From Bugula neritina (taxonomy: Eukaryota > Animalia > Bryozoa): a stretch of 64,000 bases of DNA. The stretch covers positions 8,487,150 through 8,551,149 of the forward strand of contig OZ037772.1 of NCBI GenBank assembly GCA_964035545.1, read 5' to 3'. Below the pieces are notes generated by a model that was not told the DNA's origin, made no database searches, and worked only from the letters and a program-made list of their open reading frames with translations. The position numbers were made by a program, and so were the translations under genes. This document shows positions 24,311 to 64,000 of the stretch, piece after piece; positions within the stretch are counted from its first letter, which is position 1; every line of letters begins with the position of its first letter.

Positions 24311-25381
24311 TTAATCATACTCACCAGTTGAGATGACTTCTGTTGTAGTATTCAGTCCTAAAACGGTGAACGCCTCAGAGATAACTGCAGAAAGCGGAAC
24401 ATCTGGTTGTTCTGATAAATGGTTTGCATGTACTGCATTTTGTTTCCTGAGAAGTTCTAATTGTTGGTGGTAACTAAAAGTATCTGAAAATCCATTTTCA
24501 ACACCTTTTTCTATATAAGTGTGAGATACTGTTGTTGGCAGGTCAAGGAAGGTTTGATGATCTGTATTGACATTAGAACGTTGAGAGTCTAAATTCACCG
24601 AATATATCTCAGAGCTATTATTGCATGTTACTAAAGGATCCCACTCAGCACTATACCTATCTCTACAATATGGATCCTGTCTGTAAGGATCAAGATCTTC
24701 AGATGAATAATTTCCACTTAAACTGCTAAAAGCACCAGAAGTAACTTCAGATTCTTTTGGTAGACAGTTGTTATATGGTGAAGTATCCATGTTCATAAAA
24801 CAGTCAGTGTTTGTATCAACTGTAGAAGTTATAGCAACTGAGCTTGCAGAGAAGCTATGACTTTGAACAAGGTTTTCACAGAGAGCAGGACTCTTCCACC
24901 AGACATCATTTTTAAAGATCTGATATGGCTTTTGCATCTGGTTGCTGATTGGTGTTTGAGGTATTTTATGTGGTTCTATAACTGCAAAATAAACGAAGTC
25001 TTTACAAGTTTAAATTTTAATATCTACTCAATGTCACTCAGTCCCTTCATCAATCAGTCATCCACTCCATCACTCAGTGACTCACTCAGTGACTCACTCA
25101 GTGACTCACTAAGTCACTCACTCACTCACCCACTCATTCACTCACTCACTCACTCATTCATTCACTCACCAACACCAACACCAACACCAACACCAACACC
25201 AACATATACACACAACTAAAAGTAAAATATCCAAGATTTCATTTGCCACATAACATTTGAACACTTGAATGATAGAGATTATTTTAATCAATCAATAAAT
25301 AAAGTCATCATAAAATAATAGCAAACTAACACTTTATTACTTCAACATAATGTGGGACTTACATGACGAACTCACAGGCAT
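24311..25381 (-). CDS. Copy A: finger-less paralogue (exon 1 + exon 2 only); truncated gene or effector-only protein
   Basis: Exon 1 25363-25381 (MPVSSS, GTAAGT donor); exon 2 24325-24981 open and in phase. Homology stops ~12 nt into intron 2, and read-through gives GEYD-stop at 24311. No exon 3 or finger exon is seen downstream. Confidence 0.6.
25064..25204. repeat. (CACT)n and (CACCAA)n microsatellites in intron 1 of copy A
   Basis: Directly visible tandem repeats; related tracts lie in intron 1 of most copies. Confidence 0.9.
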
Positions 25382-26555
25382 GGTAGATGAACCGAACATA
25401 ACTAAGAGACAAACGAAGGAAAAGTAACTTGCTATGTATCTAAACAATTTAAGATTTCTACTGTACTGTACCAGAAATATAAAACAATGATTTTTACTGT
25501 ATCATGAAATTATCATGGTAGTCTAGCAGCATAATGTTTTAGCTTTTTTATAGTTAACCATTGCAGTAAGCTATATTGCATATTAAAAGCTGATGGAACA
25601 ATGGGTCCTGCCTGTAAGGATCAGGTTCTTTTGTTCATCAAGCAACATTGTAATGCAAGTTTAGCACTGTATTAAACAATAGACTCTTTTTCAATACCTC
25701 TGGTACCCACTTTACAAAGGATGTTTTTGCTACCTCAGGTACTTAGTTCAACCATAATATAGAAAGCAACCTCACTATAGAAACTTATTCTAACTGCTAT
25801 ACATAAAATCTCAACTATGCTATCGAATAGTTTTTTATGAACTAAATATTTTGGTATAAGCACACATCTTAAGGTTGCTTTAAAAACATTTTGAAAAATA
25901 TTTGTTCTTGAAAATTTTATGAAGAAGGCTTCAAAGCACTTTAGTAGTTTTAATTATTGATCATTGCTGAATTAGAGACAGCTGTGATAACTATAACTAG
26001 TTATAGCAAAAGTATCCCAACTTGAGAGCGATTATGTATGGTTTTTCTGACAATGTAACAATTTGGTTATGTACATTTAACAGACCATATAATTTTACTA
26101 AAATGAGAAGGAACTGATACTAAACTGTGTAAACATATTGGCTGTTAAATAGAAGCTTTCATTAAACAATGATGTGAATTAAACAAGATAAAGAAAATTT
26201 TGTTTTATATCTCATGTTTTCACCAAGAATACTATTACTCATAAGTTACATAAAATTATTAAAATAAGACTTAAGTACTATATGCAGCATAAAATTTGAA
26301 TAAACTAAAAAACACTGAGTAAATATTATGTTGATATTTTCTAGAAAATGTTTTATATTAAATCTCTTAAAAAAATAATAAAAAATAAAGACAAATTCTC
26401 AACTCTGGATACAAAAAGTATTACTTTTGCACATGTCTAGTTTTTTGTTATCATAGAAAATACAAAAAATACATGAAAATGCAAAAAAATTCCTTCCCAT
26501 TTTATCTGGCATATAAAGGATAGAAGAATAGTCACTTGATTTATGGTAGAACAAA

Positions 26556-29110
26556 TTAATGTTTAGTATGTATTTTAGTGTGTGAATGAAGGTTAGATTT
26601 TTGATTGAACGATTTATTACAAACATTACATAGAAATGGCTTCTCTCCACTATGTGTTCTCATATGTCTAGTTAGGTCACCTTTATAAGCAAATGCTTTT
26701 TTGCACACATTGCACTGATATGGCTTCTCTCTAGTGTGTGTCCTCATATGTGAAATGAGGTTGCTTTTTTGAATGAATGATTTTTTACATGCATTGCATG
26801 AAAATGGTTTCTCTCCAGTATGTGTCCTCATATGTTGCTTTAGGCTGTTTTTGAGACTGAATGCATTCTTACAAATATGACATGGAAATGGCTTCTCTCC
26901 AGTATGTTTTCTCATGTGATTGTTGAGATTACCCATGTGTATTGCCTTGTAGCTACATATTGAACATTGAAAACACTTTCTTTTGCTCTGCTCTTCTTTA
27001 TTCTTCTCAAGACCAGCTCCTTGTGTTGACCTGTAGGCAGAAATATCATGTCCAGTTGCTTTCTCTTTGAACATTTTTCTTGTCGCCCCAACAACATCCA
27101 TAGATATGTTGGTAATGTTATGCACTTTTTCATCAGTGTAAGTCTCTATATCTCTTTTTATATCTTTAGAATAATCTCTGCACCTATTTTCATTATAAGT
27201 TTCTTTGTATAGTACATCTGGTAGATTTTTAAAAGTATAATCTCCTGTATTCAAACATGTTTGTATTTCACCTGTAAGACAATATCATAAATGGTATGCA
27301 TGATGGCATTTAAAGCTTATTCATAGTTATTAATACATCCTATAATGTCTATATGTATACTTCTTTTTTGAAAAAACAAACATATGCACGGATTTCAATC
27401 GGTTACCCATGGTTCACTAATAATGAAACCATAAAATAGTTAGTAAACTATGGAAATTTAAAAGCAGCTATAGTGAACTCTGGATAAGATCAGTGCAAAT
27501 TAGTTAAAAAAAAGGTCAAGGATTCGACCATTGGTAACAGATGTTAGAAGAGCATCTAGCCATCATTGCTCCTGTGTCTCAACCAAAGACAAGTGTTTAG
27601 CTTGTTCGAAGAATTTACTATCAGAACTTCTCATGGAGATGAAACTTTTAAAGCATTCAAAAGTTTATAAGGATCATTGATCCTGCATGCTATAAAATGT
27701 GCTTTAAGGTTGTTAATTTTTTTTGACATGTGGTAAACAAGTACTAACTTGATAAATTGTTATCTGCAAAAAGATTCAGTCCTGGAACTTTAAAAGCTCC
27801 AAATATAACTTCAGACAAAGGAACATCAGACTCTTCATGTGGATTGCCGTCATATGTTGTAGCATCTATGGGAATAGCGTTTCGGTTGTTTGGATGAATT
27901 TCATGATCTACTGTAAATAAATAATTTTATAAATAATTACTTGATAGTATTATTGTTTCATTTTTTTAATATCGTGTATTTTGATAAAATTTGCACTTTT
28001 AATGAGAGAGAAGATTTGATGGTTTAAGTTTGATCTATCTAATCATACTCACCAGTTGAGATGAATTCCATTGTAGTAGTCAATCCTAAAACTTGAAAAG
28101 CCTCAGAGATAACTTTAGACAGAAGAGCTTCAGGTTCCTTTGATGGTAGATAGTTTTCTTGTACTGCATTTTGTTTTCTGAGAAGTTCTAACTGTTGGTG
28201 GTATCTAAAGTTGTCTGCAAATCCATTTTCTACACCTTCTTCTACATATTTGTTAGACACTGTTGTTAGCATATTAAGGAAAGTTTGATTGTCTGTATTG
28301 ACATTAGAACTTTGAGAGTCTAAAACCACTGAATGTCTCTCAGAGCTGTTATTGGTTACTAAAGGATCCCACTCAGCACTATACTCATCTCTACAATATG
28401 GTTCCTGTCTATAAAGATCACAATCTTCAGATGAATCCATTCCACTTAAACTGCTAAAAGCACCAGAAGTAACTTCAGACAGAGGAACATCAAATTCTTT
28501 TGGTAGACAATTGTTATGTAGTGAAGTATCCATGTTCAAAAAACAGTGAGTGTTTGTATCAATTGTAGAAGTCATAGCAACTGAGCTTGCAGAGAAGCTG
28601 TGACTTTGAACAAAGTTTTCACAGAGAGCAGGACTATTCCACCAGACATCATTTTCAAAGATCTGATATGGCTCTTGCATCTGTTTGCTTAGTGTTTGAA
28701 GAGCTGTCTGTGGTTCCATTACTGCAAAATAAAGGCAGCCTTAACAAACTTACATTTAAACATCTACTCAAAACTTAGGAATTCCTATACATGGTGTGTG
28801 TGTTTTTTTAAATTGTGCACAATTTAAAGAAAAGACACACACACACTCACTCATTCACTCACTCATGAACTCACTCACCCCAGCATACACACATTTACAC
28901 AGTAATTAAGACCAAAAACCTAATAACAGTGAAATATGCACAAATTCATTTACCACCTAGCATGTTTACACCTAAGTTATACAAATTATTTTAATCAATC
29001 ATCTTGTTAATAAATAGTAAATAAAGAAGGCTATCATGAAATAGTAGCTTAAACTAACCAATTAATTATTTCCACATTGTTTCATACTTACATGGTTTCA
29101 TCACAGGCAT
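26556..29110 (-). CDS. Copy B: intact C2H2 zinc-finger gene, 5 fingers, ~521 aa
   Basis: Exons 29092-29110, 28053-28721, 27749-27910 and 26556-27271; GT-AG, phase 1 throughout, total 1566 nt, open; HTGEKP linkers. Confidence 0.88.
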
Positions 29111-29793
29111 GGCAGATGATCTGAACACTTCCAGAGAACACTGGAAAGAGAACTAGCAAGTTCTGAATATAAAAACTGTGAGACATTCACTGTAAACTAT
29201 GAGATTGAAGTTAAACAATGATTTGTACTGTATCACACAGTCATCTAACAGCATAATGTTTTGGCTATATTTGTTTATAATTAATCATTACAGCTAGCTA
29301 TTACACATTGGAAAGCTGATGGAACAATGTGTTAGACCTGTACCTTTGTTCATCAAGAACTAGTGGTATACATTTTGTGCATGGTTAACAAAATATTCAA
29401 AAATGATGGCCAAGTATTTTTGATAAAAAACATCATAACACCGATCTGCTGTTTCAAATTAAATTGAATAAATAGTTGAGATAAAACTGATAGGTTGGTA
29501 AATAAAGATAATTAATTTGACCAAAATTCTATTTATTTCAATTTTAAAAATATAGCACAATAACTTACATTTTGCACTATCCCAAAATGAGCATTAGAAG
29601 CATTATTAACTCATTGAAAAGTAGAGGTGCAATAGCACTTGCAATTGCGATTGATTGTAGGGTTATTTTTGATGTCTTCAAAACGCTGTTATTAATTTGG
29701 TGATGGGAATAGATGACTTATATAATAATGGCACAGATAAAGATTGGAAAAGTGGCAGTTTGAATATTGGAGTTTGGGGTTAGGGGTTTTAAG

Positions 29794-30715
29794 TTAGGGC
29801 TTTGTGTTTTGGGCTATAGAGGGTTTTGATTTTGAGCTATAATAGGGGGTTTGGGCTTTGAGGTATTGGGGGTTTAAAACTCCTAAAGCCTCAGAAACAA
29901 CTTCAGAAAGAAGAACATCAGTTTTTTTTAGTAGACAGCTGCCAAACACTGAAGCGTTTGTGTTAACATAGTCTTGAGGATTTGTATCAACTGTGGAAGT
30001 CAGAGTAACTGTGTTTACAAAAAAGCTAGGACTTTGAGTGAAAGTCTCACAGAAAGCATTAGTTGTCCACTGAACATCATTTTTAGATATCTGATTAGAC
30101 TCTTGCATCTGGTTGCTGATTGGTGCTTGATCTGTTTCATATGGTTCTATAACTGCAAAATAACAAAAGCCTTTACAAGTTTAAGTAAAAATATCAAATT
30201 AACTTTCACTCACTCAATCCATCACTCAGTCACACAGTCACTCACTCACTCGCTCGCCTGCCCGTTCGCTTGTCCACTTGCCTGGCTGCCAAAAACCGCC
30301 CGCCCGCTAGCTCACTCGCTCACTCACTTACTTACTCACTCACTTAATCACTCACCCAATCTCTCACTCAAACCAACATACTCACACTTTTGTACAATAA
30401 TTTACCCATGCAAAAGCTCAATGGAAGTGAAATATCCGAGACTTCATAGCACAATAATTTACACCTAAATTATACAGTTTATTTCAATCAATCAGCTATT
30501 TAATTAGTAATGTAGTGATGAGTTTACCCAGTGGCTCATGTGGTGTAATTGGCTAGCGCCTGCTTGCAAGCTGTAATTCTGTGGTTCGATTTCTGACAGG
30601 AGAAATTATTTTACAAATACTAAATACCAAAGGTCAACATAAAATATTAATAACACATTAACCAATCCATTAGTTCTACAGAGCAAGTATACTTACATGA
30701 ATGAATCACAGACAT
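29794..30715 (-). pseudogene. Copy C: truncated paralogue (exon 1 + 5' part of exon 2)
   Basis: Exon 1 30697-30715 (MSVIHS); exon 2 starts at 30152. Homology ends after SEALGVL (~29872) and runs into the upstream spacer of copy B. Confidence 0.8.
30531..30615 (+). mobile_element. tRNA-derived SINE head or tRNA pseudogene inserted in intron 1 of copy C
   Basis: Pol III A-box-like TGGTGTAATTGG (30541-30552) and B-box-like GGTTCGATTTC (30583-30593) at tRNA spacing. No clean cloverleaf. Absent from the homologous intron of the other copies. Confidence 0.6.
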
Positions 30716-31618: not shown

Positions 31619-34013
31619 TTATCGGTTTTTAGTGTGTTTTTTAATGTGTGAATGAAAGCTAGTTTTTTTAGTGAACGATTTGTTACACACATTGCATGTA
31701 TATGGCTTCTCTCCTGTGTGTGTCCTCATATGTGAAATAAGGTGGTTCTTTTGAGGAAATGATGTATTGCACACATTGCATGTATATGGCTTCTCTCCCG
31801 TGTGTGTTCTCATATGTCTAGTTAGGGTGCCGCTTCGAGAAAATGACTTTTTACAAACATTACATTGATATGGTTTCTCTCCCGTGTGTGTTCTCATATG
31901 TCTGGTTAGGGTGCCGCTTAGAGAAAATGACTTTTTACAAACATCACATTGATATGGTTTCTCTCCAGTGTGTGTCCTCATGTGTTGCTTTAGGATATCA
32001 CTGGTAGAGAATTTCTTTATACAAATGTGACATGAAAATGGTTTTTCTCCCGTGTGTGTTCTAAAGTGCCGAGTAAGATGTTTCATAATTTTTGTCTTAT
32101 AGTTACACTGAGGACATTTCTTTATACCCTTCTTTATTCTTCTCAAGACCAGCCTCTTGTGTTGACTCATACTTACAAACATCATGTCCAGTTGTCTTCT
32201 CTTTGATCACTTCTTCTTTCTGATTGAGGACATCTGTAGGCTGGTTGGCCATCTTATACACTATTTGATCAGTTTGAGTCACTATACTCCTGTTTATTTC
32301 TTTAGAATAGTCATTGCACTTATATTCATAAGTTTCTTTGTACAGTGTATTTGGTAAAATTTCAGAATATAAATGATCTTAGATTTCCCCTGTAAAACAG
32401 TATTACAAATGATATAATAGCATTGAGTTTTCATTCATAGTTTTTTTAATGTTATTAATACATCCTAATGTATAAATTATGTATTCTTCTTTTTTTGAGA
32501 AAACATGGATCCAATTCAATCAGTTACTAATATGCCACCAATGATGGAAGCACAACTAGCTATATAATATATCAATTTAAAGAGTTATTAAATCAACTAC
32601 TATTGAAAGCAGTTATTGCACTACTGGAAAAGATGATGCTAGCTTAATTAGAACTATAAAATCATGACATACATTATTGGTTAAGGCCATATTGGTGTTA
32701 GGAGAAGCATTCAGCCATAATTTTTCCTTTGCCACAATAGAAAATATGTTTTCAGCTTTCTGAAAACTTTACCATTCAGGCTTTTACAGTTAAACCAGTC
32801 ACCAGTTAAACTGGTTTTTAAATTGCTTTTCAGCATTTTGAACAGATTTTAACATGTGTTACACACATACTAACCCGATGATATGTAGTCCGCTAAGGCA
32901 TTCAACCCTAAAACTTTTAAACTGTCAGAGATAGCTTCAGAGAGAGGGGCACCAGGTTCTTCTGGTAGGTACTTGTCATACACTGTGGCTTCTATGAAGA
33001 AAGAGGTTGTATGCATCAACCAGAGGTTAACTAAATCGTAAATGAGTATATAGTTGTAAAATGATACTTGGCTAATTTATTTTATTGTTTAATCCTTAAT
33101 ATCATGTGATATCATTTCAATTAGTGATTGCAATGAATGAAATATTTGATGGTTTTTGCTTTATTAATCTAATCAGTATACTCACCAGTTGAAATGACTT
33201 CCGGTACAGTATTCTGTCCAAAAACTTTATAAGTCTGATCAGACATAACTTCAGATGTAGTAAAATCAGGTTTTTCTTGCAGATAGTTTTCACGTACTGC
33301 ACTTTGTTTCCTGGGATGTTCCAAATGTGGGCGGTTGCTCAAAAAATCTGAGAATTCATTTTCTACACCTTCTTGGACATAAGTGTCAGATACTGTTGTT
33401 GGCATTTCACGGAAAGTTTGATTGTCTGTATTGACATTAAAACTTTGAGAGTCTAAATTCACCGAATGTCTCTCAGAGCTGTTATTGGTTACTAAAGGAT
33501 CCCACTCAGCACTATACTCATCTCTACAATATGAATCCTGTCTGTAAGGATTAGGATTTTCGGGTAAATAATTTCCACTTGAACTGCTAAAAGCTTCTGG
33601 CAACATAGGAATATCAGATTCTTGTGATAGACGGTTGTCATATGCTGCAGTTTCTGTGTTAACATTGTCTTGAGTGTTTGTATCAACTGTAGAAATTAAA
33701 GGAGCTGAGTTTACAGAAAACCTATGAGGAGCTTGAGTAAAATTCTCAGAGAGAGCTCTTGTATAAGTTCACTCAGCGCACACACTCGCACACACTCGCA
33801 CACACTCGCACACACTCGCACACACTCGCACACACTCGCACACACTCGCACACACTCGCACACACTCGCACACACTCGCACACACTCGCACACACTCGCA
33901 ATCATCGTTAATGAATTATAAATATAAAAAAGGCTATCATGGAATAGTAGCCTAGACTAACTAATTAGTTATTTTCACAGCCTTTTATACTTACACGGTT
34001 TAATCACAGACAT
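31619..34013 (-). pseudogene. Copy D: disrupted ZNF gene, 6 intact fingers
   Basis: Exons 33995-34013, 33186-33721 (536 nt, 1-nt deletion vs copy E), 32875-33030 and 31619-32389. CAA>TAA at 32379-32381, and a frameshifting deletion at ~32118-32130 just before finger 1. Confidence 0.8.
33777..33899. repeat. 10-bp tandem repeat (CACACTCGCA)n, ~12 copies
   Basis: Perfect array, directly visible. Confidence 0.97.
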
Positions 34014-35611: not shown

Positions 35612-38291
35612 CTATGGTAGACCAGACTGATTTTTAGTATGTATTTTAGTGTGAGACAGAAGGCTAGCTTTACTAGTGAATGACTTCTTACAAATATGAC
35701 ATAGAAATGGCTTCTCTCCATTATGTGCTCTCATGTGTCTGGTTAAGGAACTTTGTTGAGTAAATGATTTATTACACACACTGCATGAAAATGGTTTTTC
35801 TCCAGTATGTGTCCTCATATGTTGCTGTAGAGTAATTCTGTGTCTGAATGCATTTTTACAAATATGACATGAAAATGGTTTCTCTCCAGTGTGTGCTCTC
35901 ATGTGTCTGGCTAGGGAACCTTTTTGAGCGAATGATTTGTTACACACATGACATAGAAATGGCTTCTCTCCAGTGTGTGTCCTGACATGTTTCTGCAGGG
36001 TACCTCTTTGGCTGAATGCAGTTTTACAAATATGACATAGAAATGGCTTCTCTCCTGTGTGTATTCGCATGTGACAGATAAGAGCATTTTTCCAGGCAAA
36101 AGCAGACCCACATATTTCACATACAAATGGCTTCTCTCCAGTATGTATTCTCATGTGTCTGTCCAGACTACCCATATCCCTTGCCTTGAAGCTACATAGT
36201 GAACACTGAAAACACTTCCTTTTGTTCTGCTCTTCTGTATTCTCATCAAAACCAGCTTCTTGTGTCGACTCATACTCAGAAACATCATGTAAAGTTGTCT
36301 TTTCTGTGATTCCTTCTTCTTTCTGATCAAGGATATCTGTTGCCTGGTTGGCCATCTTATACACCATTTGATCAGTTTGAGTCACTATACTTCTGTTTAT
36401 TTCTTTAGAATAGTCATTGCAATTATATTCATAAGTTTCTTTGTACAGTGTATCTGGTAGAATTTCAGAATATAAATGATCTTGGATTTCCCCTGTAAAA
36501 CAGTATTACAAATGATATAATAGCATTGAGTTTTCATTCATAGTTTTTTTAAAGTTATTAATACATCCTAATGTATAAATTATGTATTCTTCTTTTTTTT
36601 GAGAAAACATGGATCCAATTCAATCAGTTACTAATATGCCACCAATGATGAAAGCACAACCAGCTATAATATATCAATTTAAAGAGTTATCAAATCAACT
36701 ACTATTGAAGCAGTTATTGCACTACTGGAGGATATGATGCTAGCTTAATTAGAACTATAAAATCATGACATACATCATTGGTAAAGCCATATTGGTGTTA
36801 GGAGAAGCATTCAGCCATAATTTTTCCTTTGCCACAATAGAAAATATGTTCTCAGCTTTCTGAAAACTTTACCATTCACGCTTTTACAGTTAAACCAGTC
36901 ACCAGTTAAACTGGTTTTTAAATTATTTTTCAGCATTTTGAACAGATTTTAACATGTGTTAAACACATACTAACCCGATGATATGTAGTCCGCTATGGCA
37001 TTCAACCCTAAAACTTTTAAACTGTCAGAGATAGCTTCAGACAGAGGGGCACCAGGTTCTTCTGGTAGGTCCTTGTCGTACACTGTGACTTCTATGAAGA
37101 AAGAGGTATATGGTTCTATGCATCAACCATGGGAACTGAATCGTAAATGAGTATAGTTGTAAACTGATACTTGGCTAATTTATTTTATTGTTTAATCCTT
37201 AATATTATGTGATATCATTTCAATTAGTAATTGCAATGAATGAAACATTTGATGGTTTTTGCTTTATTTATCTAATCAGTATACTCACCAGTTGAAATGA
37301 CTTCCGATGCAGTATTCTGTCCTAAAACTTTAAAAGTCTGATCAGACATAACTTCAGATGTAGTAAAATCAGGTTTTTCTTGTAGATAGTTTTTATGTAC
37401 TGCACTTTGTTTCCTGGGATGTTCCAAATGTGGGCGGTTGCTCAAAAGATCTGAGAATTCATTTTCTACACCATCTTCGACATGAGTGTCAGACACTGTT
37501 GTTTGCATTTCAAGGAAAGTTTGATTGTCTGTATTGACATTAAAACTTTGAGAGTCTAAATTCACCGAATGTCTCTCAGAGCTGTTATTGGTTACTAAAG
37601 GATCCCACTCAGCACTATACTCATCTCTACAATATGAATCCTGTCTGTAAGGATTAGGATTTTCGGGTAAATAATTTCCACTTGAACTGCTAAAAGCTTC
37701 TGGCAACATAGGAATATCAGATTCTTGTGATAGACAGTTGTCATATGTCGCAGTTTCTGTGTCAACATTGTCTTGAGTGTTTGTATCAACTGTAGAAATT
37801 AAAGGAGCTGAGTTTATAAAAAAACCTATGAGAAGTTTGAGTAAAGTTTTCAGAGAAAGCTCTTGTATATGTTCACTCAGCACACACTAGAACACACCCG
37901 CACACACCCGCACACACCCGCACACACCCGCAAACACCCGCACACACCCGCACACACCCGCACACACCCGCACACACCCGCACACACCCGCACACACCCG
38001 CACACACCCGCACACACCCGCACACACTCGCACACACTCGCACACACTCGCACACACTCGCACACACTCGCACAGGCACACAATGGTAATGAAAGTTCCA
38101 ATGACACAGTAAGATCCACATGAGAGTGCAATTGCTAAAAAATTTTGTACACTTACACAGTATAAGTTTACTTTTTTTTTCAATCATTCTTTAGAAACAG
38201 ATAGATATGAAAACCATTGAATAGTACCAATTAGCCAACAATTTTTTAATGTTTACAAAAATTTATACTTACATGGCTGGCCCCCAGACAT
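35612..38291 (-). CDS. Copy E: C2H2 ZNF gene, 7 fingers, ~478 aa if exon 3 is skipped
   Basis: Exon 1 38273-38291 (MSGGQP); exon 2 37289-37825 via a derived acceptor (cttctcatag); exon 3 36975-37135 has an in-frame TAG and +2 nt; finger exon 35612-36492 is open. Confidence 0.72.
37893..38073. repeat. 10-bp tandem repeat (CACACCCGCA / CACACTCGCA)n, ~18 copies
   Basis: Directly visible; the two variants sit in separate blocks. Confidence 0.97.
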
Positions 38292-40091: not shown

Positions 40092-42757
40092 TTAACACAG
40101 CAGCTTTGCAGCTATACTTAGAATAGATTGATTCTTAGCGTGTATTTTAGTGTGAGACAGAAGGCTAGCTTTACGAGCAAATGATTTGTTACACACAGGA
40201 CATAGAAATAGTTTCTCTCCACTATGTGCTCTCATGTGTCTGGTTAGGGAACTTTTTTGAGCAAATGATTTTTTGCACAGATGACAGGAATATGGCTTCT
40301 CTCCAGTGTGTATCCTCATATGAGGCATAAGGGTACTCTTGTGGGAGAATAATTTATTACACACACTGCATGAAAATGGTTTTTCTCCAGTATGTGTCCT
40401 CATATGTTGCTGCAGAGTAATTCTGTGTCTGAATGCATTTTTACAAATATGACATGCAAATGGCTTCTCTCCAGTGTGAGTTCTCATATGTTGCTGCAGG
40501 GTAGATCTTTGACTGAATGCACTTTTACAAATATGACATGAAAATGGTTTCTCACCAGTGTGTGTCGACTCATATGGTTGATGAGCACATCTTTCCAGGT
40601 AAAAGCAGACCCGCATATTTCACATATAAATGACTTTTTTCCAGTATGTATTCTCATGTGCCTGTTGAGATGACTTATCTGCCTTGCTTTGTAGCTACAT
40701 ATTGAACATTGTAAACAGCTCCTTGAACTATGCTGTTCTGTATTTTTCTCAACACCAGCTCCTTGTGTCAACTCATACTCAGACACATCATGTAAAGTTG
40801 TCTTCTCTTTGATCACTTCTTTTGTCTGCTCAACAACATCTATAGATATGTTTGTATTGTTATGCACTTTGTGATCGGTCTCCATATCATTGTTTATATT
40901 TCTATACTGATCTCTCAGTTTATATTCATGAGCTTCTTTGTATAGAACATCTGGTAGATTTTCAGAAGTATCTCCTGTATGAAAACACGAATGTATTTTA
41001 CCTGTAAAACAATGTTAGAAACAGTAAATTACAAATGGTATGATTGCATTCAGTTTTCATTCATAGTTTATTTAACGTTACTAATACATTCAAATACATA
41101 TATTTGTACTTTTTTTTAAGAAAACATGAATTCAATTGAATCAGCTACCAATATGCCACCAATGATGAAAGCACAATTAGCTAGATCAATTAAACGAGTT
41201 ATTTAACCAACTACTTTCAAAAGCAGCTAATGCAGTACTTGCAGAAGGTGATGCTAGCTTAATGAGAACTATAAAGTCATGGTGTTAATTATTGGTAAAG
41301 GTCATTTTTGGTGTTAGGGGGAGCATTCAGCCACACGTTTTCCATGGTCACAATAGAAAATATGGTGTTAGCCTGCTGAGAAACTTCACCGTTCAGGCTT
41401 TCATAGTTAAATCAGTCACCAGTTAAATTCAATTTAAATTGATCTTTCAGGTTGTTGAACAAATTTTAACATGTGGTAAACATATACTAACTTGATAAAT
41501 TGTAGTCCCCTGTGGCATTCAACCCTAGAACTTTAAAAGTGTCAGAGATAATTTCAGACAGAGGAACATCAGGTTTTTCTGATAGGTACTTGTCATATAG
41601 TGTGGCTTTATTGGGAAAAGAGGTATTGTTGAGTGTATCAACCATGGGAACTGCAATGTAAATGAGTAAAGTTGCAAACTGGTCTTTAGCAAATTTCTTT
41701 TGTTGTTTCTTCAATAACATGTGATGTTAATTAAAATCATCAATTGCAGTGAAAGAGACATTTGACGGTTTTCATTTTGTCTATCTAAACACACTTACCT
41801 GTTGAGATGACTTCTGTTGTAGTATTCAGTCCTAAAACTTGAAAAGCCTCAGAGATAACTTTAGACAGAGGAACATCAGTTTCTTCTGGTAGATAAAATC
41901 TTTGTATGGCATTTTGTTTTCTGAGAAGTTCTAATTGTTGGTTGTAATTAAAAGTATCTGAATAATCATTCTCAACATCATCTTCTACACCTTCTACATA
42001 AGTGTGAGATACTGTTGTTGGCATGTTAAGGTGGGTTGGATTGTAATCTGCATTGTCATTAAAAATGTTAGAGTCTAAATTCCTTGATTGTCTTGAAAAG
42101 CTGTGATTGGTTACTAAAGGATCCCACTCAGCACTATACTCATCTCTACAATATGGATCCTGTCTGTAGGGATCAGGATTTTTGGATGAACAATCTTCAG
42201 ATAAAACTCCAAGAGCTTTAGAAAAAACTTCAGGCGGATGAACATTAGATTCTTGTAGTAGACAGCTGTTGTACACTGAAGCTTTTGTGTTAACATAGTC
42301 CTGGGGGTTTGGATCAACTGTGGAAGTCAAAGGCACTGCGTTTACAAAACAGCTAGGCCATTGAATAAAATTCTCACAGAGATCAGGAATCGTCCACTCA
42401 TTATTATTTTGAGAGATGTGATGAAGTTCTTGCATCTGTTTAATTGATGTTCGAAGAATTGTATGTGGTTCTATAACTGTAAAGTAAAGAAAGCCTTTAA
42501 GAGCTTGCATCAAAATATCTACTCAAAGTTCACTCACTCAAAATAATACCCAAAAGACTCAATGGAAGTAACACGTATCCATGAGTTCACTTGCCACACA
42601 ACATGTTTACTCCAAAGTTATACAAATGATTTTAATCAACCATGCATCTTGTTAATGAATTATAAATATAAAAAAAGCTATCATGAAATAATAGCCTAAA
42701 TTAACTAATTAGTTATTTCCACGGCCTTTTATACTTACACGGTTTAATCACAGACAC
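40092..42757 (-). pseudogene. Copy F: disrupted ZNF gene, 7 fingers
   Basis: The exon-1 ATG is lost by a ~16-nt deletion (cagaca^cacttcc at ~42756). Exons 41799-42476 and 41492-41650 are open. The finger exon 40092-41001 has a +2 insertion at ~40566-40567 at the end of finger 2. Confidence 0.82.
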
Positions 42758-47960: not shown

Positions 47961-50624
47961 CTAATTCTTAGAATGTATTTTAGCATGTGACTGAAGAGCC
48001 TGCTTACGAGTAAATGATATTTTGCACACATGACATGCAAATGGCTTCTCTCCAGTGTGTGTCTTCAAGTGTTGCTGTAGGTTGTATTTGAGACTGAATG
48101 TACGTTTACAAATATGGCATGAAAATGGCTTCTCTCCACTGTGTGTCCTTTTATGTCGTTTCAGGGTAGTTTTGTGACTAAATGCTGTTTTACAGATATG
48201 GCATAAAAATGGTTTCTCTCCAGTATGTGTCCTGAGATGCTGTTGCAGGGTAAATTTTTGACTGAATGCAGTTTTACAAAAATGACATGCAAATGGCTTT
48301 TCTCCAGTGTGTGTTCTTATATGACGGATGAGAACATGTTTCCAGGTAAAAGCAGACCCGCATATTTCACATATAAATGACTTTTTTCCAGTATGTATTC
48401 TCATGTGCCTGTTGAGATGACTCATCTGCGTTGTCTTGTAGCTACATATTGAACATTGAAAACAGCTCCTTGCACTATGCTGCTCTGTATTCTTCTTAAG
48501 ACCAGCTTCTTGTGTCAACCTATACTCACAAACATCATGTATAGTTGTCTTCTCTTCGATCACTCCTTTTGTCTGCTCAACAACATCTATAGATATATTT
48601 GTATTGCTATGCATTTCTTGATCAATCTTCATATCTGGGTTTATATTTCTAGAATGGTCTCTCAGTTTATATTCATGAGTTTCTTTGTATAGAACATCTG
48701 GTAGATTTTCAGAAGTATCTCCTGTATAAAAACACGATTGTATTTTACCTGTAAAACAATGTTATAAACAGTAAATTACAAATGATATGATTGCATTCAA
48801 TTTTCTTCATAGTTTATTTAACGTTACTAATACATTCAAATATATATATTTGTACTTATTTTTTAAAAAAACATGAATCCAGTTCAATTAGCCACCAATA
48901 TGCCACCAATGATGAAAGCACCATTAGTTAGATCAATTAAACGAGTTGTTTAATCAACTACTTTTAAAAGCAGCTAGTGCACTACTTGCAGAAGATGATG
49001 CTAGCTTAATGAGAACTATAAAATCATGGTGTTTATTATTGGTACAGGTCATTTTTTAGGGTTAGGGGGAGCATTCAGCCACAATGTTTTGCTTGGCACA
49101 ATAGAAAATATGTTGTCAGCCTGCTGAAAAACTTTACCATTCAAGCTTTCATAGTTAAATCAGTCACCAGTTAAATTTAATATGAATATATCTTTCAAGT
49201 TGCTGGACAGACTTTAACATGTGCAGTTAGACATATACTAACCTGATGGTTTGTAGTTCGCTGCGGCATTCAACCCTAGAACTTTAAAAGTGTCAGAGAT
49301 AGCTTCAGACAGAGGAACATCAGGTTTTTCTGGTAGGTACTTGTCATATAATGTGGCTTCCACAGGAAAAGAGGTATGGTTGAGTGTATCAACTGTGGGA
49401 ACTGAAATGTAAATGAGTAAAGTTGCAAACTGGTCTTTAGCAAATTTCTTTTGTTGTTTCTTCAATAACATGTGATGTTAATTAAAATCATCAATTGCAG
49501 TGAAAGAGACATTTGACGGTTTTCATTTTGTTTATCTAAACACACTTATACCTGTTGAGATGACCTCTGTTGTAGTATTCAGTCCTAAAACTTGAAAAGC
49601 CTCAGAGATAACTTCAGACAGAGAAACATCAGTTTCTTCTGGTAGATAGTTTTCTTGTACTGCATTTTGTTTCCTGAGAAGTTCTAATTGTTGGTTGCAA
49701 TTAAAAGTATCCAAAAATTCATTCTCAACACCATCTTCTACATCTTCTACATAAGTGCCAGGTACTGTTGTTGGCATGTCAAGATAGATTGGATTGTAAT
49801 CTGCATCGTCATTAAAAATGTTAGAGTCTAAAATCACTGAATGTCTCTCAGAGCTGTTATTGGTTACTAAAGGATCCCACTCAGCACTATACTCATCTCT
49901 ACAATATGAATCCTGTCTGTAGGGATCATGATTTTTGGATGAATAATCTTCAGATAAAACTCCAAGAGCTTTAGAAAAAACTTCAAACGGATGAACATTA
50001 GATTCTTGTGGTAGACAGCTGTTGTACACTGAAGCTTTTGTGTTAACATAGTCCTGAGGGTTTGTATCAACTGTGGAAGTCAAAGGAACTGCGTTTACAA
50101 AAAAACTAGGACTTTGAATAAAAGTTTCACAGAGAGCAGGAATCATCCACTCATATTCATTTTTGGTTATCCGATGAGGCTCCTGCATCTGGTTTAGATT
50201 GCATTGGATTGGTTTGGATTGCATTGTTGTTTTAGATATTTTATGTGGTTCTAATATATCATAACTGCAAAATAAAGAAAGCCTTTACAAGTTTACATTA
50301 AAATATCTACTCAAGGTTTACACACTCACTGACTCACTCACTCATTCACTCACTCACTGACTCACTCACTCACTCACTCACTCACTCACTCACTCACTCA
50401 CTCACTCACTCACTCACCAATTAATACCAACATACACACACTTTCAGCCAAAAAGCTGAATAGAAGTAAAATATCTAGGAATTCATTAGCCACACAATCT
50501 TTTTACACTTGAATCATAAAGATTATTTTAATCAATGAATAAATAAAGCTATCATAAAACGATAGGAAACTAACCAATTTATTATCATCAGAAGGCTATA
50601 CTTACATGACTCACTCACAGACAT
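47961..50624 (-). CDS. Copy H: C2H2 ZNF gene, 6 fingers; exon1-exon2 junction out of frame, but open from the ATG at 50224
   Basis: Exons 50606-50624, 49552-50264 (713 nt; an 8-nt insertion near the acceptor gives MSVSESFMIY-stop), 49243-49401 and 47961-48748. The downstream exons are open and in phase. Confidence 0.6.
50324..50416. repeat. (CACT)n microsatellite in intron 1 of copy H
   Basis: Directly visible, ~23 units. Confidence 0.95.
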
Positions 50625-52202: not shown

Positions 52203-54608
52203 CTATGGTAGAATAGATTGATTCTTAGCGTGTATTTTAGTGTGAGACAGAAGACTAGCTTTACGAGTGAATGATTTTTTGCACACATTGCATTGATATG
52301 GTTTCTCTCCAGTGTGTGTCCTCATATGTGACATAAGGTGACCCTTTTGAGTGAAAGACTTTTCACACACATTGCATAAAAATGGTTTCTCTCCAGTGTG
52401 TGTCCTGACATGTTGCTGCAGGGTAACTCTTCGGCTGAACGCACTCTTACAAATATGACATGCAAATGGCTTCTCTCCAGTGTGCGTCCTCATATGACGG
52501 ATGAGAACCACTTTCCAGCTAAAAGCAGACCCACATATTTCACATATAAATGACTTTTCTCCAGTATGTATTCTCATATGCCTGTGGAGATAACCCATGT
52601 GCCTTGTCTTGTAGCTACATATTGAACATTGTAAACACTTCCTTTTGCTCTGCTCTTCTGTATTCTTTTCCAGACCAGCTTTTTGTGTTGACGCACAAAT
52701 GTTATGTACAAATGGTTTTTCTTTGATCAATTCTTTTGTCGGCCCAACAACATCCATAGATATGTTGGTAATGTTATACGCTTTTTGATCAGTGTGAGTC
52801 CCTATATCTCTGTTTATATCTCTAGAATGGTCTCTCCACTTGTATCCATAAGTTTCTTTGTCCGGTGGATCTGGTGGAATTTCAGAAACATCTCCTGTAT
52901 TCAAACACAACTGCATTTCACCTGTAAAACAGTATTAAAAATTTTAGGATGGTATCCAAGGTTAATTCCCAATTTATTTAACATATATTATAAATATATT
53001 GTTTTGAAAAAAAACATGGATCCGATTCAATCAGTTACCAATATGCCACCAATGATGGATGCACAGTTATAGCTAGATCAATTAAAAGAAGTATTAAATT
53101 AACTACTTTTGAAAGCAGATACAGTGCACTACGGAAGAAGATAATACTAGGCTGATTAAAACTATAAATTTGATTATTGGTAAAGGGCGCTGGTGGTGTT
53201 AGGAAAATACATTCTCAGCCTGCTGTAAAGATTTACCATTCAGGCTCTCACAGTTGAACCAGTCACCAGTTAAACTTGTTTTAAAATGATCTTTCAGGTT
53301 GTTGAACAGATTTTAACATGCATTGAACATATTATACTTACCTGATGATTTGTAGCCCGCTGTGGCATTCAACCCTAGAACCTTAAGAGTGTCAGAGATA
53401 ATTTCATACAGAGGAACATCAGGTATTTCTGGTAAATACTTGTCATATACTGTGGGTTCCACGGGAAAAGAGGTATGGTTGATTGTATCAACTGTGGGAA
53501 CTGAAATGTAAATGAGTAAAGTTGCACACTGATTTTTAGCAAATTTCTTATGTTGTTTTTTCAATAACATGTGATGTTAATTTAAATCATCAATTGCAGT
53601 GAAAGAAACATTTGATGGTTTTCATTTTGTCTATCCAAACACACTTACCTGTTGAGATGACTTCTGTTGTAGTATCCAGTTCTAAAACTTGAAAAGCCTC
53701 AGAGATAACTTCAGACAGAGGAACATCAATTTCTTCTGGTAGATAGTTTTCCTGTACTGAATTTTGTTTTCTGAGAAGTTCTAATTGTTGGTTGTGACCA
53801 AAAGTATCTGAATATTCATTCTCAACACCATCTTTTACATCTTCTACATAAGTGTGAGATGCTGTTGTTGGCATGCTAAGGTAGGTTGGATTGTAATCTG
53901 TATTGTCATTAAAAATGTTAGAGTCTAAATTCACTGAATGCATTGAAGAGCTGTTATTGGTTACTAATGAATCCCACTCAGCACTATACTGATCTCTACA
54001 ATATGGATCCTGTCTGTAGGGATCAGGATCTTTGGATGAATAATCTTCAGATAAAACTCCAAAAGCTCTAGAAAAAACTTCAGACGAATGAACATCAGAT
54101 TCTTGTGGTAGACAGCTGTTGTACACTGAAGCTTCTGTGTTAACATAGTCCTGAGGGTTTGTATTAACTGTGGAAGTCAAAGGAACTGCGTTTACAAAAA
54201 AGCTAGGACACTGAATAAAAGTCTCACAGAGATCAGGAATCGTCCACTCAAAATCATTTTTAGAGATGTGATGAAGTCCTTGCATTGATTGACTTGATGT
54301 TTGAAGAATTGTATGCGGTTCTATAACTGTAAAGTAAAGAAAGCCTTTAAGAGCTTGCATCAAAATATCTACTCAAAGTTCACTCACTCAAAACAATACC
54401 CAAAAGACTCAATGGAAGTAACGTGCATCCATGAGTTCACTTGCCACACAACATGTTTACTCCAAAGTTATACAACTGATTTTAATCAACCATCTTTAAT
54501 TGTTAATGAATAATAAATATAAAAAAGGCTATCATGAAATAGTAGCCTAAACTAATCAATTAGTTATTTCCACAGTGTTTCATACTTACATGGTTTAATC
54601 ACAGACAT
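52203..54608 (-). CDS. Copy I: intact C2H2 ZNF gene, 5 fingers, ~524 aa
   Basis: Exons 54590-54608 (MSVIKP), 53649-54326, 53342-53500 and 52203-52921; all donors GTAAGT; total 1575 nt. Confidence 0.9.
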
Positions 54609-56309: not shown

Positions 56310-58772
56310 CTATGGTAGACCAGACTGATTCTTAGCATGTATTTTAGTGTGAGACAGAAGGCTAGCTTTACTAGTGAATGACTTCTTACAGACAGGGCAT
56401 AGAAATGGCTTCTCTCCAGTATGTGTTCTCATATGTCTGGTTAGGGCACTTTGTTGAGTAAATGATTTTTTGCACACATGGCATGAATATGGCTTCTCTC
56501 CGGTGTGTGTCCTCATATGTAACATAAGGTTACACTTTCGAGAGAATGATTTCTCACACAAATTGCATAGAAATGGTTTCTCTCCAGTGTGTGTCCTCAT
56601 ATGTCGTTGCAGGGTAATTCTTTGACTGAATGCACTTTTACAAAAATGACATGAAAATGGTTTCTCTCCAGTGTGTTTTCTCATGTGTTGGTTGAGATGA
56701 CCCATTTGTCTGGTTTTGTAGCTACATATTGAACACTGAAAATGTTTCCTTTCACTATGCTGCTCTGTATTCTTTTCAAGACCAGCTTCTTGTGTGAACT
56801 CATACTCACAAACATCATGTAAAGTTGTCTTCTCTTTGATAACTTCTTCTTTCTGATCGAGGACATCTGCAGGCTTGTGGGCCATTTTATACACTATTTG
56901 ATCAGTTTGAGTCACTATACTTCTGTTTATTTCTTTAGAATAGTCATTGCACTTATATTCATAATTTCTGTTGCACAGTAGATCTAATAGATTTCCGAAA
57001 GTGCCTCCTGTAGTTAAACATGCATTTGGTTCACCTATAAAGCAACGGTACAAACATTGAAGTGGCATTCAAGTTTACTCATTTTATAATATCACTAATA
57101 TAATAAGCTAATTTTGCAGTATATATGTATATAATTCAATTCTTATAGAAAAACAAAGATATGCATGCAGCTCAATCAATTACCAATAATGTACCAATGA
57201 TTAGAGCATATTATTTAAGTTGATAAGTTAAAAAGTTCATTAAAATAATTAAATTAGAAAGCAGGTAGTGGTATTGGGGATGAGACTACTAGAAATTAGT
57301 CAGAACAAGGTTTAATATATTTTGATATGTGGTAAGCTTATACTGACAATTAGAAATAACTTCAGACAAGAAAACATCAGGCTCTTTAGGTAAAAGGCTG
57401 TCACATGCTGTGGCTTCCAATAGAAAAGGGTTCTGGTTGCTTGCATCAACTTCAGTAACTAAAATGAATATAAGTGAAGTCTTAAACTAAGACGGAACTG
57501 TAACTGTAACTGTAACTGTAACTGTAACTGTAACTGTAACTGTAACTGTAACTGTAACTGTAACTGCATGTAACTGTAACTGTAACTGTAACTGTATTTG
57601 TAACTGTAACTGTAACTGTAACTGTAACTGTAACTGTATAACTGTAACTGTAACTTTAACTGTAACTGGAACTGGAATGAGATATAATAGATCTGATTGT
57701 TTTTGAGTTATCTATCTGAACACACTCATGCACCTGTTGAGATGACTTTCGTTGTAGTAGGAAATCCTAAATCTTGATTAACCTGAGAGATAACTTCAGA
57801 CAGAGAGACATCACATTCTTCTGGTAGAAAACAGTCAAACACTAAATCCTGCTTTTTGAGATCTTTTGACTTTCGGTGGTAATTGAAAAGATCTAAATGT
57901 AGACTCTTTACAAATTCTTCTATATAAGAGTCAGATACTGTTTGATTGTATGTATTGACATTAAAACTTTGAGAGTCTGAAATAACAGAATATCTCAGAG
58001 AACTGTTATTGGTTACTAAAGGAACCCACTCAGCACCATGCCTTTCTTTACAGTGTGGCTCCTGTCTGTAATCATTGTGTTCTTCAGATGGATAATCTTT
58101 ACCTAAAACTTCAAAAGCTGAAGTAAAGACTTCGGATAGAGAATAATCAGGTTCTTCTGGTGGACAGTGGTTATGCACTGTAGCTTCTGCGTTAATATAG
58201 TTCTGGGGGTTTGTATCAACTGTGGAAGTTAAAGGAACTAATTCTGAAGAAAAGCTAGCAGGTTGAGCAAAGTTATCACAGACAGCAGAAGTCTCCCACT
58301 CAACATCACTTTCAAAGATCTGGTAAGATTTTTGTATTCTTTTGCTTGAACTTTGCGGACTCATTTCTGTTTTTGTGACTAAAAAATAATTAAAATGTGT
58401 ACTACAAATCGGCATTACAACATATTTTATTAAAGGAAATTCTTCGTCTGTATTGACACTGTACTGCTTCCTCGCTCACCTCAATCGCTGGCTCAGCTTA
58501 CTCGTTCACTCACGGACACTCTAGCACACTGCCATGTACACACTCAGACACTCACACTAGTATGCACACACTCACACAGGTGCTGAATAATACTAAAATG
58601 TCTAATGGTACCTTAACAATCATGAACGTGTAATATTGACACAAATTTGTACACTCAAACTAAAAAGTTAATATTTAATTATTCGTATTTCGAAACTGAT
58701 GAACAAGACAACCGCAAAATATGAGATCAATTTTTGCAGAATGTTATACTTACATGGTTGACCCCCAAACAT
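56310..58772 (-). CDS. Copy J: probably intact C2H2 ZNF gene, 5 fingers, ~499 aa; closest paralogue of copy G
   Basis: Exons 58754-58772 (MFGGQP), 57734-58378, 57348-57458 and 56310-57034. The exon-2 donor is weakened to GTGCAT by a 4-nt insertion. Confidence 0.8.
57493..57677. repeat. (TAACTG)n hexamer microsatellite in intron 2 of copy J
   Basis: Directly visible; same position as the tract in copy G. Confidence 0.95.
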
Positions 58773-59823: not shown

Positions 59824-59842
59824 ATGGTTTCATCACAGACAT
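59824..59842 (-). pseudogene. Orphan exon 1 (MSVMKP) with its upstream region; gene body deleted
   Basis: ATGTCTGTGATGAAACCAT followed by an altered donor GTTACAAGT. At ~59785 the sequence switches to the 3' flank seen below copy H (cf. ~47720). Confidence 0.75.
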
Positions 59843-61428: not shown

Positions 61429-64000
61429 CTATGGTAGCATAGATTGATTTTTAGTGTGTATTTTAGTGTGAGATAGAAGGCTAGCTTTACGAGTGAATGA
61501 TTTTTTGCACACATTGCATTGATATGGCTTCTCTCCATTATGTGCTCTCTTGTGATTGGTTAGGCTCCCTTTTTGGGTGAAGGAATCTTTGCACACATGG
61601 CATTGATATGGTTTCTCTCCAGTGTGCGTCCTCATATGTTGCTGTAGGGTAGAGCTTTGACTAAATGCACTTTTACAAATATGGCATGCAAATGGCTTCT
61701 CTCCAGTGTGTGTTCTTATATGACGGATGAGAACATGTTTCCATGCAAAAGCAGAGCCACATATTTCACATATAAATGACTTTTTTCCAGTATGTATTCT
61801 CATGTGCTGGTTGAGATGACTCATCTGCGTTGTCTTGTAGCTACATATTGAACATTGTAAACAGCTCCTATTCTGTTCTGTATTCTTCTTCAAATCAGCT
61901 CCTTGTGTCAACTCATACTCACAAACATCTTGTATAGTTGTCTTCTCTTTGATCACTTCTTTTGTCTGCTCAACAACATCCATAGATATGTTTGTATTGT
62001 TATGCACTTTGTGATCAGTCTCCATATCATTGTTTATATTTCTAGAATGATCTCTCAGTTTATATTCATAAGTTTCTTTGTCCAGTGAATTAGCTATTAG
62101 AACTTCAGAAGTGTCTCCTGTAATTAAAAATGCTATAGTAGGTATTTCACATGTAAAACAAAATTGCAAATGGTATAATGGCATTCCAGTTGGATTGACA
62201 TAGTTTATTTAATGCCATTAATATATTTTAAAGTATATATATATATGCATGTATATACTTCTTCTTTTACAAGAAAAATTCATCCCTTTCAATCAGTTAC
62301 CAATACACCATCATATCTAGATCAAGTAAAAGAGTTATTAAATCAACACCAACTGGAAGCAGCTACTGTAATATTAAAGGGTACAAAGTTAGCTTAATTG
62401 GAACTATAAAGTTTTATATTGGTAAAGACCATTGGTTATGTCAGGAAGATCATTCAGCCATAATTTCTTTCTTTGTCACAATGGAAAGTAGGTCTTCAGC
62501 TTGCTGAAAACCTTACTGTTCAGACTTTCATAGTTAAACCAGTCACTGCAATTAAATTCATTTGAAAAAATCTTTCAGTTTTTTGAACAGATTTTAGCAT
62601 GTGTTAGACACATACTAACCTGATGATGTGTAGTTCCCTGCGGCATTCAACCCTAGAACTCTAAGAGTGTCAGAGATAACTTCAGACAGAGGAACATCAG
62701 GTTTTTCTGGTAAGTACTTGTCATATACTGTGACTTCAACAGGAAAAGAGGTATTGTTGAGTGTATCAACCGTGGGAAGTGAAATGTAAATGAGTAAAAT
62801 TGCAAACTGATTTTTAGTAAATTTCTCTTGTTGTTTTTTTAAAATCATGTGATGTCAATTTAAATCGTCAACTGCAATGAGAGAAGCGTTTGATTGTTTT
62901 TGTTTTATCTGTCTAAACACACTCACCTGTTGATATGACTTCTGTTGTAGTATTCAGTCCTAGAACTTGAAAAGCCTCAGAGATAACTTCAGACAGAGGA
63001 ACATCAGGTTCTTCTGGTAGATAGTTTTGTTGTACTGCATTTTGTTTCCTGAGAAGTTCTAGTTGTTGGTTGTAACTAAAAGTATCTGAAAGTTCATTCC
63101 CAACACCATCTTCTACATCTGCTATATAAGTGCCAGATACTGTTGTTGGCATATTAAGGTAGGTTGGATTGTAATCTGTATTGTCATTAAAAATGTTAGA
63201 GTCTAAATTCACTGAATGTCTCTCAGAGTTGCTATTGGTTACTAAAAGATTCCACTGAGCACTATACTTATCTCTACAAAATGGTTCCGGTCTGTAAGGA
63301 TCACAATCTTCAAATGAATAGTTTCCACCTAAATTTCTGAAAACTCCAGAAACAACTTCAGACAAAGGATTTTCAGATTCTTTTGGTAGACAATTGTTAT
63401 ATGGTGAAGTATCCATGTTCACAAAACAGTGAGTGTTTGTATCAACTGTAGAAGCCAAAGGAACTGCACTTGCAGAAAGGCTATGACTTTGAAGAAAGTT
63501 TTCACAGAGAGCAGTGCTCTTCCATCCAACATCATTTTTAGAGATCTGATATGGCACTTGCATCTGTTTGCTTAGGGTTTGGAAAGCTGCCTGCATTTCT
63601 ATTACTGCAAAATAAAGACGGCTTTTACAAGCTTACATTAACATATCTACTCAAGACTCAAAGATTCCACAACTTCAAACGACTTCCAACACAGACACAT
63701 GCTGTTGGTCTCTCACATGCCCACTCACTCACTCACTCACTCAGCCACCACTCACTCACTTCCTTATTCATTCTCTCACTCACACCAACATACACACATT
63801 TACATATTTACACCAAAAACCCAATGAAAGTGAAATATGGACAAATTCATTTACCACCCTGCATGTTTACACCTAAATTGTACAAATTATTTTAATCAGT
63901 CATCATTTCAATGAATATCAAATAAAGAAGGCTATCACAAAATAGTAGCTTAAACTAACCAAATAATTACTTGCACAGTATTTTATACTTAGGCCTACAT
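61429..64000 (-). CDS. Copy K: C2H2 ZNF gene, 5 fingers; exon 1 runs off the window; two canonical acceptors mutated
   Basis: Exon 2 62927-63604 is open. The exon-3 (62620-62778) acceptor is CAG>CAC and the finger-exon acceptor is CAG>CAT (~62151), but an in-phase ttttaattacag lets the exon start at 62117. The finger ORF is open to 61429. Confidence 0.65.

Follow-up and report, generated by a model that had tools for sequence, protein, structure and literature searches.

KRAB, ZAD, and FiNZ proteins are the main examples of how quickly animals can evolve new families of regulators. In tetrapod KRAB zinc-finger (KRAB-ZNF) genes, one or more effector exons precede a single finger exon, and the genes form tandem clusters with pseudogene turnover and rapidly changing contact residues, while the ZAD-ZNF genes represent a lineage-specific clustered expansion of C2H2 genes in insects, with a private N-terminus. 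The FiNZ genes of cyprinid fish are also a large, clustered, and lineage-private C2H2 family with fast-evolving fingers; their N-terminal sequence is short (28 amino acids), glutamate-rich, and without similarity to known domains (PMC10547256). Dozens of other lineage-private zinc-finger families are still uncharacterized (Wells et al. 2023, PMC10547256). Here, we describe a clustered C2H2 zinc-finger family of the bryozoan Bugula neritina that resembles the KRAB-ZNF, ZAD-ZNF, and FiNZ families in architecture and evolutionary behavior, based on a 64,000-nucleotide stretch of contig OZ037772.1 (assembly GCA_964035545.1, hereafter “the window”, C8:8487150-8551149 in the 216,009,554 bases searched). 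No description of bryozoan zinc-finger families was found in the literature, and the Bugula family is a new, lineage-specific bryozoan case of a known class, namely lineage-private clustered zinc-finger genes. Its distinguishing element is a proline-plus-helix motif of ~25 residues, which is the best conserved part, between clusters, of an acidic N-terminal tail and is present in three copies per gene in the window.

Judged by their general design, the FiNZ genes appear to be the closest known family in style, although the Bugula motif differs in that it ends a ~230-residue acidic exon, is found one to three times per gene, and occurs once as a cassette exon, all in another phylum. In addition, FiNZ genes have experimental links to transposon repression, whereas the Bugula family is described here from its sequence and was compared with the published description of FiNZ. 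The two other systems differ at the N-terminus: KRAB is a compact module binding TRIM28, and the Bugula genes instead include a disordered tail with a short predicted helix and no KRAB box; ZAD is a folded, zinc-binding, four-cysteine dimerization domain, while no conserved cysteine quartet is found in the corresponding Bugula exon. Expression of both KRAB and FiNZ genes peaks when the embryonic genome is first activated.

The unit plan in the window consists of a 19-nucleotide start microexon, exon 2, exon 3, and a single finger exon, all on the minus strand. An earlier reading made from the sequence only had proposed that separate classes of open reading frames (ORFs) splice into one ~500-amino acid gene with all junctions in phase 1, and this model held when the reference copy, gene I, was read base by base:

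52203..54608, minus strand: gene I, reference copy, 524 codons, five C2H2 fingers
54608-54590, minus strand: gene I exon 1, ATG at 54608, 19 coding nucleotides (the ATG, five codons, and one base), then GTAAGT
54326-53649, minus strand: gene I exon 2, 678 nucleotides
53500-53342, minus strand: gene I exon 3, 159 nucleotides
52921-52203, minus strand: gene I exon 4, five C2H2 fingers, stop codon TAG

All introns of gene I have GT-AG borders, all junctions are in phase 1, and the exons sum to 1572 coding nucleotides (524 codons). Since exons 2 and 3 are in phase 1 on both sides, skipping, duplicating, or shortening exon 3 keeps the frame. The searches and structure predictions reported below were run exon by exon.

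The three N-terminal peptide strings that the sequence-only reading had quoted for gene I are present verbatim, and its proposal that exon 3 duplicates part of exon 2 is borne out at both protein and DNA levels. In gene I, the exon 3 peptide matches exon 2 residues 187–219 (BLASTP E 1e-8, 48% over 33 residues) and residues 64–92 (E 2e-4), while at the DNA level exon 2 positions 212–275 and 581–644 are 78% identical, as are exon 3 positions 49–126 and exon 2 positions 568–645. The repeated unit is longer than 22 residues, and an upstream stretch, approximately VNTEATVYDNY, belongs to the repeat. A hidden Markov model (HMM) built from the motif instances identified 30 copies in the window, with three (R1, R2, and R3) per complete unit, which in gene I are the following:

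54040..54144, minus strand: R1, inside exon 2 (VNTEASVYNSCLPQESDVHSSEVFSRAFGVLSEDY), degenerate; motif HMM 58 bits, BLASTP match to exon 3 at E 2e-4
53671..53775, minus strand: R2, 3′ end of exon 2, where sister clusters carry their single motif; motif HMM 72 bits
53364..53468, minus strand: R3, most of cassette exon 3; motif HMM 47 bits, BLASTP match to R2 at E 1e-8

The best-kept copy varies between units, i.e., R2 in F, H, I, and K, R3 in D and E, R1 together with R2 in G and J, and all three in B, and each intact unit retains at least one motif copy scoring ≥44 bits. We read this variation among subfamilies as redundancy after duplication.

As to its structure, the N-terminus appears from composition and structure prediction to be a short motif in an acidic disordered tail, and not a folded domain. 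Exon 2 has a net charge of -29 and an isoelectric point of 4.1, with 37 acidic and 8 basic residues and 40% S/T/N/P/Q, and is predicted to be disordered (mean predicted local distance difference test score, pLDDT, of 41.8 and predicted template modeling score of 0.11; AlphaFold with alignment A1 of 24 exon-2 paralogues). The motif consists of an extended proline/acidic YLPEEPDVP segment, a predicted 11-residue amphipathic helix (LSEVISEAFxV), and an L-G pair. When predicted alone with an alignment of 73 copies (A3), AlphaFold places the helix at residues 23–33 (LSEVISEAFQV) with a block pLDDT of 87. The sequence-only reading had inferred a novel effector domain from this N-terminus: the novelty stands, in that no described family is matched, but “domain” does not describe a short motif in a disordered tail.

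Searches of Pfam returned only C2H2 families, located in the finger exon, and no match in exons 2 or 3. For the KRAB box (PF01352), hmmscan against Pfam-A gave no match at E values up to 1 for exon 2, exon 3, or the 73 motif copies. The ZAD (PF07776) was likewise without a Pfam match, alignment A1 includes no conserved cysteine quartet, with C109 as its only nearly invariant cysteine, and the predicted disorder of exon 2 also speaks against a ZAD fold. SCAN and BTB had no Pfam match and no match between the exon 2 profile and the sequences of the PDB. As judged from these sequence tests, membership of the KRAB, ZAD, SCAN, or BTB families is excluded, as the sequence-only reading had anticipated. 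Broader searches led to the same result: the A1 profile, compared with 1.84 billion protein representatives, retrieved no described family, its only matches being two spurious repeat proteins and nine short fragments that are Bugula-like; the ESM Atlas provided no usable match and the PDB sequences none; a homologue search with exon 2 returned P0001 only, and one with the pre-finger part of exon 4 returned nothing. The two repeat proteins, P0005 (a bacterial SprB-repeat protein) and P0008, were rejected as homologues, as the match is confined to a low-complexity stretch. LTI65_PGEED was also rejected as a family for the motif, with scores of 15–16 bits in 31 motif copies, below the cut-off of 27.3.

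Next, the genome was searched for further members of the family. Matches to exon 2 were found at C1:26.74-26.78 Mb, C4:16.55-16.64 Mb, C3:9.66 Mb, C8:4.61-4.65 Mb, and C8:10.72-10.78 Mb, and the motif marks a Bugula superfamily of at least 66 copies in six clusters. In each of 22 sister-cluster loci, a homologous N-terminal exon carries the only motif, at its 3′ end, and 4–7 fingers were found downstream on the same strand in seven of the nine sister loci checked. Across the six clusters, the consensus is identical over 14 consecutive motif columns (DVPLSEVISEAF-VLG), with patchy agreement elsewhere. Only the cluster in the window has three motifs per gene, along with an N-terminal extension of exon 2 and an extra exon 3, whereas the sister genes, including those near C8:4.6 Mb and C8:10.7 Mb, have a single motif. 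Taken together, these comparisons place R2 at the ancestral position, and R1 (with the N-terminal extension of exon 2) and R3 are additions specific to the present cluster. R3 is a new exon copied from the end of the old one, donor included, and the triplication is a local derivative of a single-motif ancestor common to clusters on three other chromosome-scale contigs and elsewhere on C8.

We then evaluated selection on the fingers and on exon 2. Pooled NG86 ratios of non-synonymous to synonymous substitution rates (dN/dS) over 777 reciprocal-best finger pairs were 0.02 for zinc and core residues, 0.21 for linkers, 0.42 for other positions, and 1.06 for contact positions -1, 2, 3, and 6, and the predicted contact residues differ between the finger arrays of the cluster. 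By this measure, the fingers look functional and behave as those of working genes, and the cluster appears to consist of DNA-binding C2H2 genes with one finger exon per gene. The proposal of a clustered, fast-turnover C2H2 family with one finger exon and a private N-terminus is supported, and the dN/dS of ~1 at contact positions, standing against 0.02 in the core, is what would be expected for families of the KRAB, ZAD, or FiNZ type. For exon 2, comparisons between clusters yielded a dN of 0.08–0.12 and a dS of 0.15–0.22 in the motif core, compared to a dN of 0.47–0.71 and a dS of 0.74–0.81 in the rest of the exon. The 72-nucleotide core of gene K shares 90–96% identity with copies from C1, C4, and remote parts of C8. 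Constraint on the motif is visible only on comparison with the sister clusters.

From these data, we lean toward a reading in which the motif docks a shared cofactor and thereby couples DNA recognition to a transcriptional or chromatin output, a function that we infer and hold to be somewhat probable. In such a protein, a C-terminal array of 5–8 C2H2 fingers would read DNA, the N-terminal part would be formed by the long, strongly acidic, disordered tail, and the motif (YLPEEPDVP and helix) would fold onto the cofactor. The ancestral R2 would have been copied twice, as R1 inside exon 2 and as R3 in a separate cassette exon with phase 1 borders, so that a protein may offer up to three docking sites; these would be partly redundant, decay differently by subfamily, and presumably provide some benefit in number, in genes that are presumably expressed. 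In composition, the tail resembles an acidic activation region no less than a repressor, given its predicted disorder, net negative charge, and short hydrophobic helix.

Several observations weigh against this docking function. Within the cluster, exon 2 is only weakly constrained (omega 0.84, GY codon model), and the repeats are without amino acid constraint, with NG86 dN/dS of 1.46 for R1 and 1.03 for R2; the value for the central block of the exon is 0.82. A dN/dS near 1 across the repeats had been named beforehand by the sequence-only reading as grounds for giving up its proposal; this is what R1 and R2 display within the cluster, while between clusters constraint is seen. Moreover, 25 copies spread over five clusters and three chromosome-scale contigs share the 28-mer encoding PLSEVISEAF (window 53690-53720) without a single difference, and the low synonymous divergence of the motif implies that part of its conservation may act on RNA or DNA and not on the peptide. 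Finally, a public contig (L001, positions 1-1310, a Logan contig of SRR4020085) includes exon 1, a short exon 2, exon 3, a partial exon 2, and a second exon 3 without introns, with five motif copies of which the last is frameshifted, and terminates in a 3′-untranslated-region-like end without fingers; it is ~90% (at most 92%) identical to the genome (units D, E, and B). We rejected L001 as a firm transcript, in view of a library type that is not established, the ~90% identity, and the absence of fingers. Its origin may lie in a sibling lineage of B. neritina, as a transcript or a processed copy, or it may be an assembly chimera, and it weakly supports the exon 1-2-3 junctions and the variation in motif number, though not the junction to the finger exon.

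The nucleotide-level conservation of the motif bears on an alternative in which the tail is largely dispensable. The motif would then be preserved for its nucleotide sequence, for instance as an exonic splicing enhancer close to the donor of this long exon or as a small-RNA target site common to the copies, or it would be homogenized by short gene-conversion tracts. The depressed dS of the motif and the omega near 1 within the cluster both fit this alternative, as does the 28-mer, for which 66 copies were found within three mismatches compared to none for a reversed control. All of these copies lie inside family clusters, apparently in sense orientation (confirmed for the fetched loci only). 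Against this alternative, no antisense copy was found outside the clusters at ≤3 mismatches. Free gene conversion among copies is unlikely because the R2 of genes I, H, and K match the 28-mer perfectly (in gene I, the 28 nucleotides are shared without change by copies on C1, C4, and other parts of C8), whereas R1 and R3 in these three genes are at least three bases off. R2 is also nearer to copies on other chromosomes than to the R1 and R3 of its own gene, a few hundred bases away, and such position-tied conservation argues against free conversion as well. Furthermore, nucleotide identity between clusters peaks at 0.88, 0.96, and 0.82 over 60 nucleotides of the motif but falls before the exon end and is at background level in the intron, and the core dN still amounts to half of an already low dS. 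On balance, we consider a dispensable tail to be quite improbable. The synonymous conservation may be due to a splicing enhancer, to an RNA target that the copies have in common, or to selection acting strongly at both levels. A motif that is doubly coded, such that 28–60 nucleotides of RNA or DNA common to at least 66 copies in six clusters are themselves functional, strikes us as a long shot; it might then act as a small-RNA target common to all copies, or as a signal for splicing or regulation, and transcripts of the present cluster would hold up to three.

The genes might also be KRAB-like repressors aimed at transposons, with the motif recruiting a silencing factor, for which HP1 would be a candidate through its chromoshadow domain and the PxVxL-like PDVPL. 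The superfamily consensus includes P-D-V-P-L, and a chromoshadow gene is present in the genome at one locus. In the published HP1-ligand pattern, though, D at -1 and P at +1 are atypical, which weighs against HP1 as the partner, and positions -2 (P) and +2 (L) vary in the present cluster (to I, T, C, S, or N, and to P, S, Q, or T, respectively). The tandem clustering, pseudogene turnover, and fast contact residues are those of KRAB- and FiNZ-type families, and such families have been argued to track retroelements across animals (Wells et al. 2023, PMC10547256), which we count for repression; yet the net charge of -29 and the hydrophobic helix are at least as typical of activation regions, and we regard transposon-directed repressors as unlikely. 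The one chromoshadow-domain (HP1-type) locus found in the genome lies at G000:C4:20646319-20646560 (L051 1501-1742, minus strand), where a phase-2 intron interrupts the domain within a Trp codon. Finally, the motif could be a self-association element through which the proteins pair or cluster, as ZAD, SCAN, and BTB domains do. The one-face hydrophobic spacing of the predicted amphipathic helix and the presence of several copies per chain would suit such a role, but R1 and R2 are packed against nothing in the AlphaFold monomer and an 11-residue helix is short for a stable coiled coil, so that we give self-association very little credence.

The sequence-only reading had counted ~11 repeats of the gene. 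A comparison of gene I exons with the window (blastn) identified 11 exon-2 copies and nine finger exons on the minus strand, from 24327 to 63602, but only six units (B, E, G, H, I, and J) seem intact, while K and A are uncertain and C, D, and F are broken. The units other than gene I are:

61429..64000, minus strand: unit K; exon 2 63602-62927, exon 3 62778-62620, exon 4 62150-61429, five fingers
56310..58772, minus strand: unit J; ATG 58772, exon 2 58355-57734, truncated exon 3 ~57451-57346, exon 4 57034-56310, five fingers
47961..50624, minus strand: unit H; ATG 50624, exon 2 50188-49552, exon 3 49401-49243, exon 4 48748-47961, six fingers
44345..46749, minus strand: unit G; ATG 46749, exon 2 46335-45714, truncated exon 3 45483-45378, exon 4 45069-44345, five fingers
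40119..42757, minus strand: unit F, pseudogene; exon 1 remnant ~42757-42740, exon 2 42476-41799, exon 3 41650-41493, exon 4 41001-40119
35612..38291, minus strand: unit E; ATG 38291, exon 2 end ~37289 (blastn match 37823-37291), exon 3 within 37135-36977, exon 4 36492-35612, seven fingers
31626..34013, minus strand: unit D, probably a pseudogene; ATG 34013, exon 2 33754-33188, exon 3 33007-32877, exon 4 32389-31626, six fingers
29875..30715, minus strand: unit C, fragment; exon 1 (ATG 30715) and exon 2 truncated after R1 (30152-29875)
26556..29110, minus strand: unit B; ATG 29110, exon 2 28719-28055, R3 27875-27771 in exon 3 (~27910-27750), exon 4 27271-26556, five fingers
24327..25381, minus strand: unit A; exon 1 (ATG 25381) and exon 2 (24981-24327) only in the window

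Start microexons were found by pattern search upstream of A, B, C, D, E, G, H, I, and J. An orphan start microexon with a weak donor (59842-59824, ATG TCT GTG ATG AAA CCA T, then GTTACA) lies ~1.1 kb upstream of J exon 1 at 58772, and is either left over from a unit since lost or serves as an alternative first exon. Exon 1 of unit K falls at or beyond the window end (about 63999-64035). The integrity of K seems uncertain, with AC in place of the exon 3 acceptor AG and AT in place of the exon 4 acceptor AG, and in-phase alternative AGs nearby. In the closely related units G and J, the truncated exon 3 is without a usable donor (in J, the second motif half is missing and no usable donor is in phase), and is probably skipped, with the frame kept by skipping. 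The first ~41 nucleotides of H exon 2 were too diverged for blastn, with a peptide alignment extending to ~50254. In unit F, a 16-bp deletion took away the ATG, and the reading frame shifts after finger 2 and runs into a premature stop. Exon 2 is shorter in units D and E, and their exon 3 starts from an acceptor further downstream, forms also seen in L001; in E, an in-frame TAG occupies the canonical exon 3 start and the downstream acceptor is used, while in D, TAA is the third full codon of exon 4, and R1 and R2 are degenerate. Unit C is without exon 3 and exon 4, and in unit B all three motif copies score 58–62 bits.

For unit A, a matching exon 3 and an eight-finger exon were found ~27 kb downstream, outside of the window (window coordinates about -2766 to -4011). 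The intervening ~27-kb stretch, which includes window 1-24000, is without family genes and probably represents transposon insertions into intron 2 of unit A. It holds a 435-amino acid ORF (10139-11446) and ORFs at 7110-8068 that look like the tail of a long interspersed nuclear element reverse transcriptase; a Pfam search of four ORFs in window 1-24000 gave no match. With flanks included, the whole cluster spans ~C8:8.442 to 8.588 Mb (about 145 kb) and comprises ~28 units and 27 finger arrays of 2–8 fingers. Units A, B, and C (window 24327-30152) have near-identical twins ~42 kb to the right (G000:C8:8553444-8559209), and D and E have twins near 8.580–8.587 Mb; these twins of A–E are recent segmental duplications within the cluster. 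Introns of several units also include microsatellite-like runs (37863-38187, 45514-45700, 24857-25219, 29974-30468, and 63551-63895), which yield long spurious ORFs on both strands. Intron 1 of A, C, and K holds TGAGTGAG-type runs, unit E has GTGTGCGA-type repeats upstream of exon 2, and in unit G a hexamer run directly follows the exon 2 donor.

By itself, the Bugula family leaves existing knowledge unchanged, and the points specific to the window are the triplication with its cassette exon and the synonymous-site conservation of the motif. If the motif were doubly coded, the whole zinc-finger superfamily could be controlled together, much as microRNAs target coding motifs that are repeated in the zinc-finger genes of mammals. 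Overall, the family is a clean case from the bryozoans, in which the candidate effector is very small (~25 residues), and the natural one-motif and three-motif versions, together with a frame-neutral cassette exon, make this motif easy to test.

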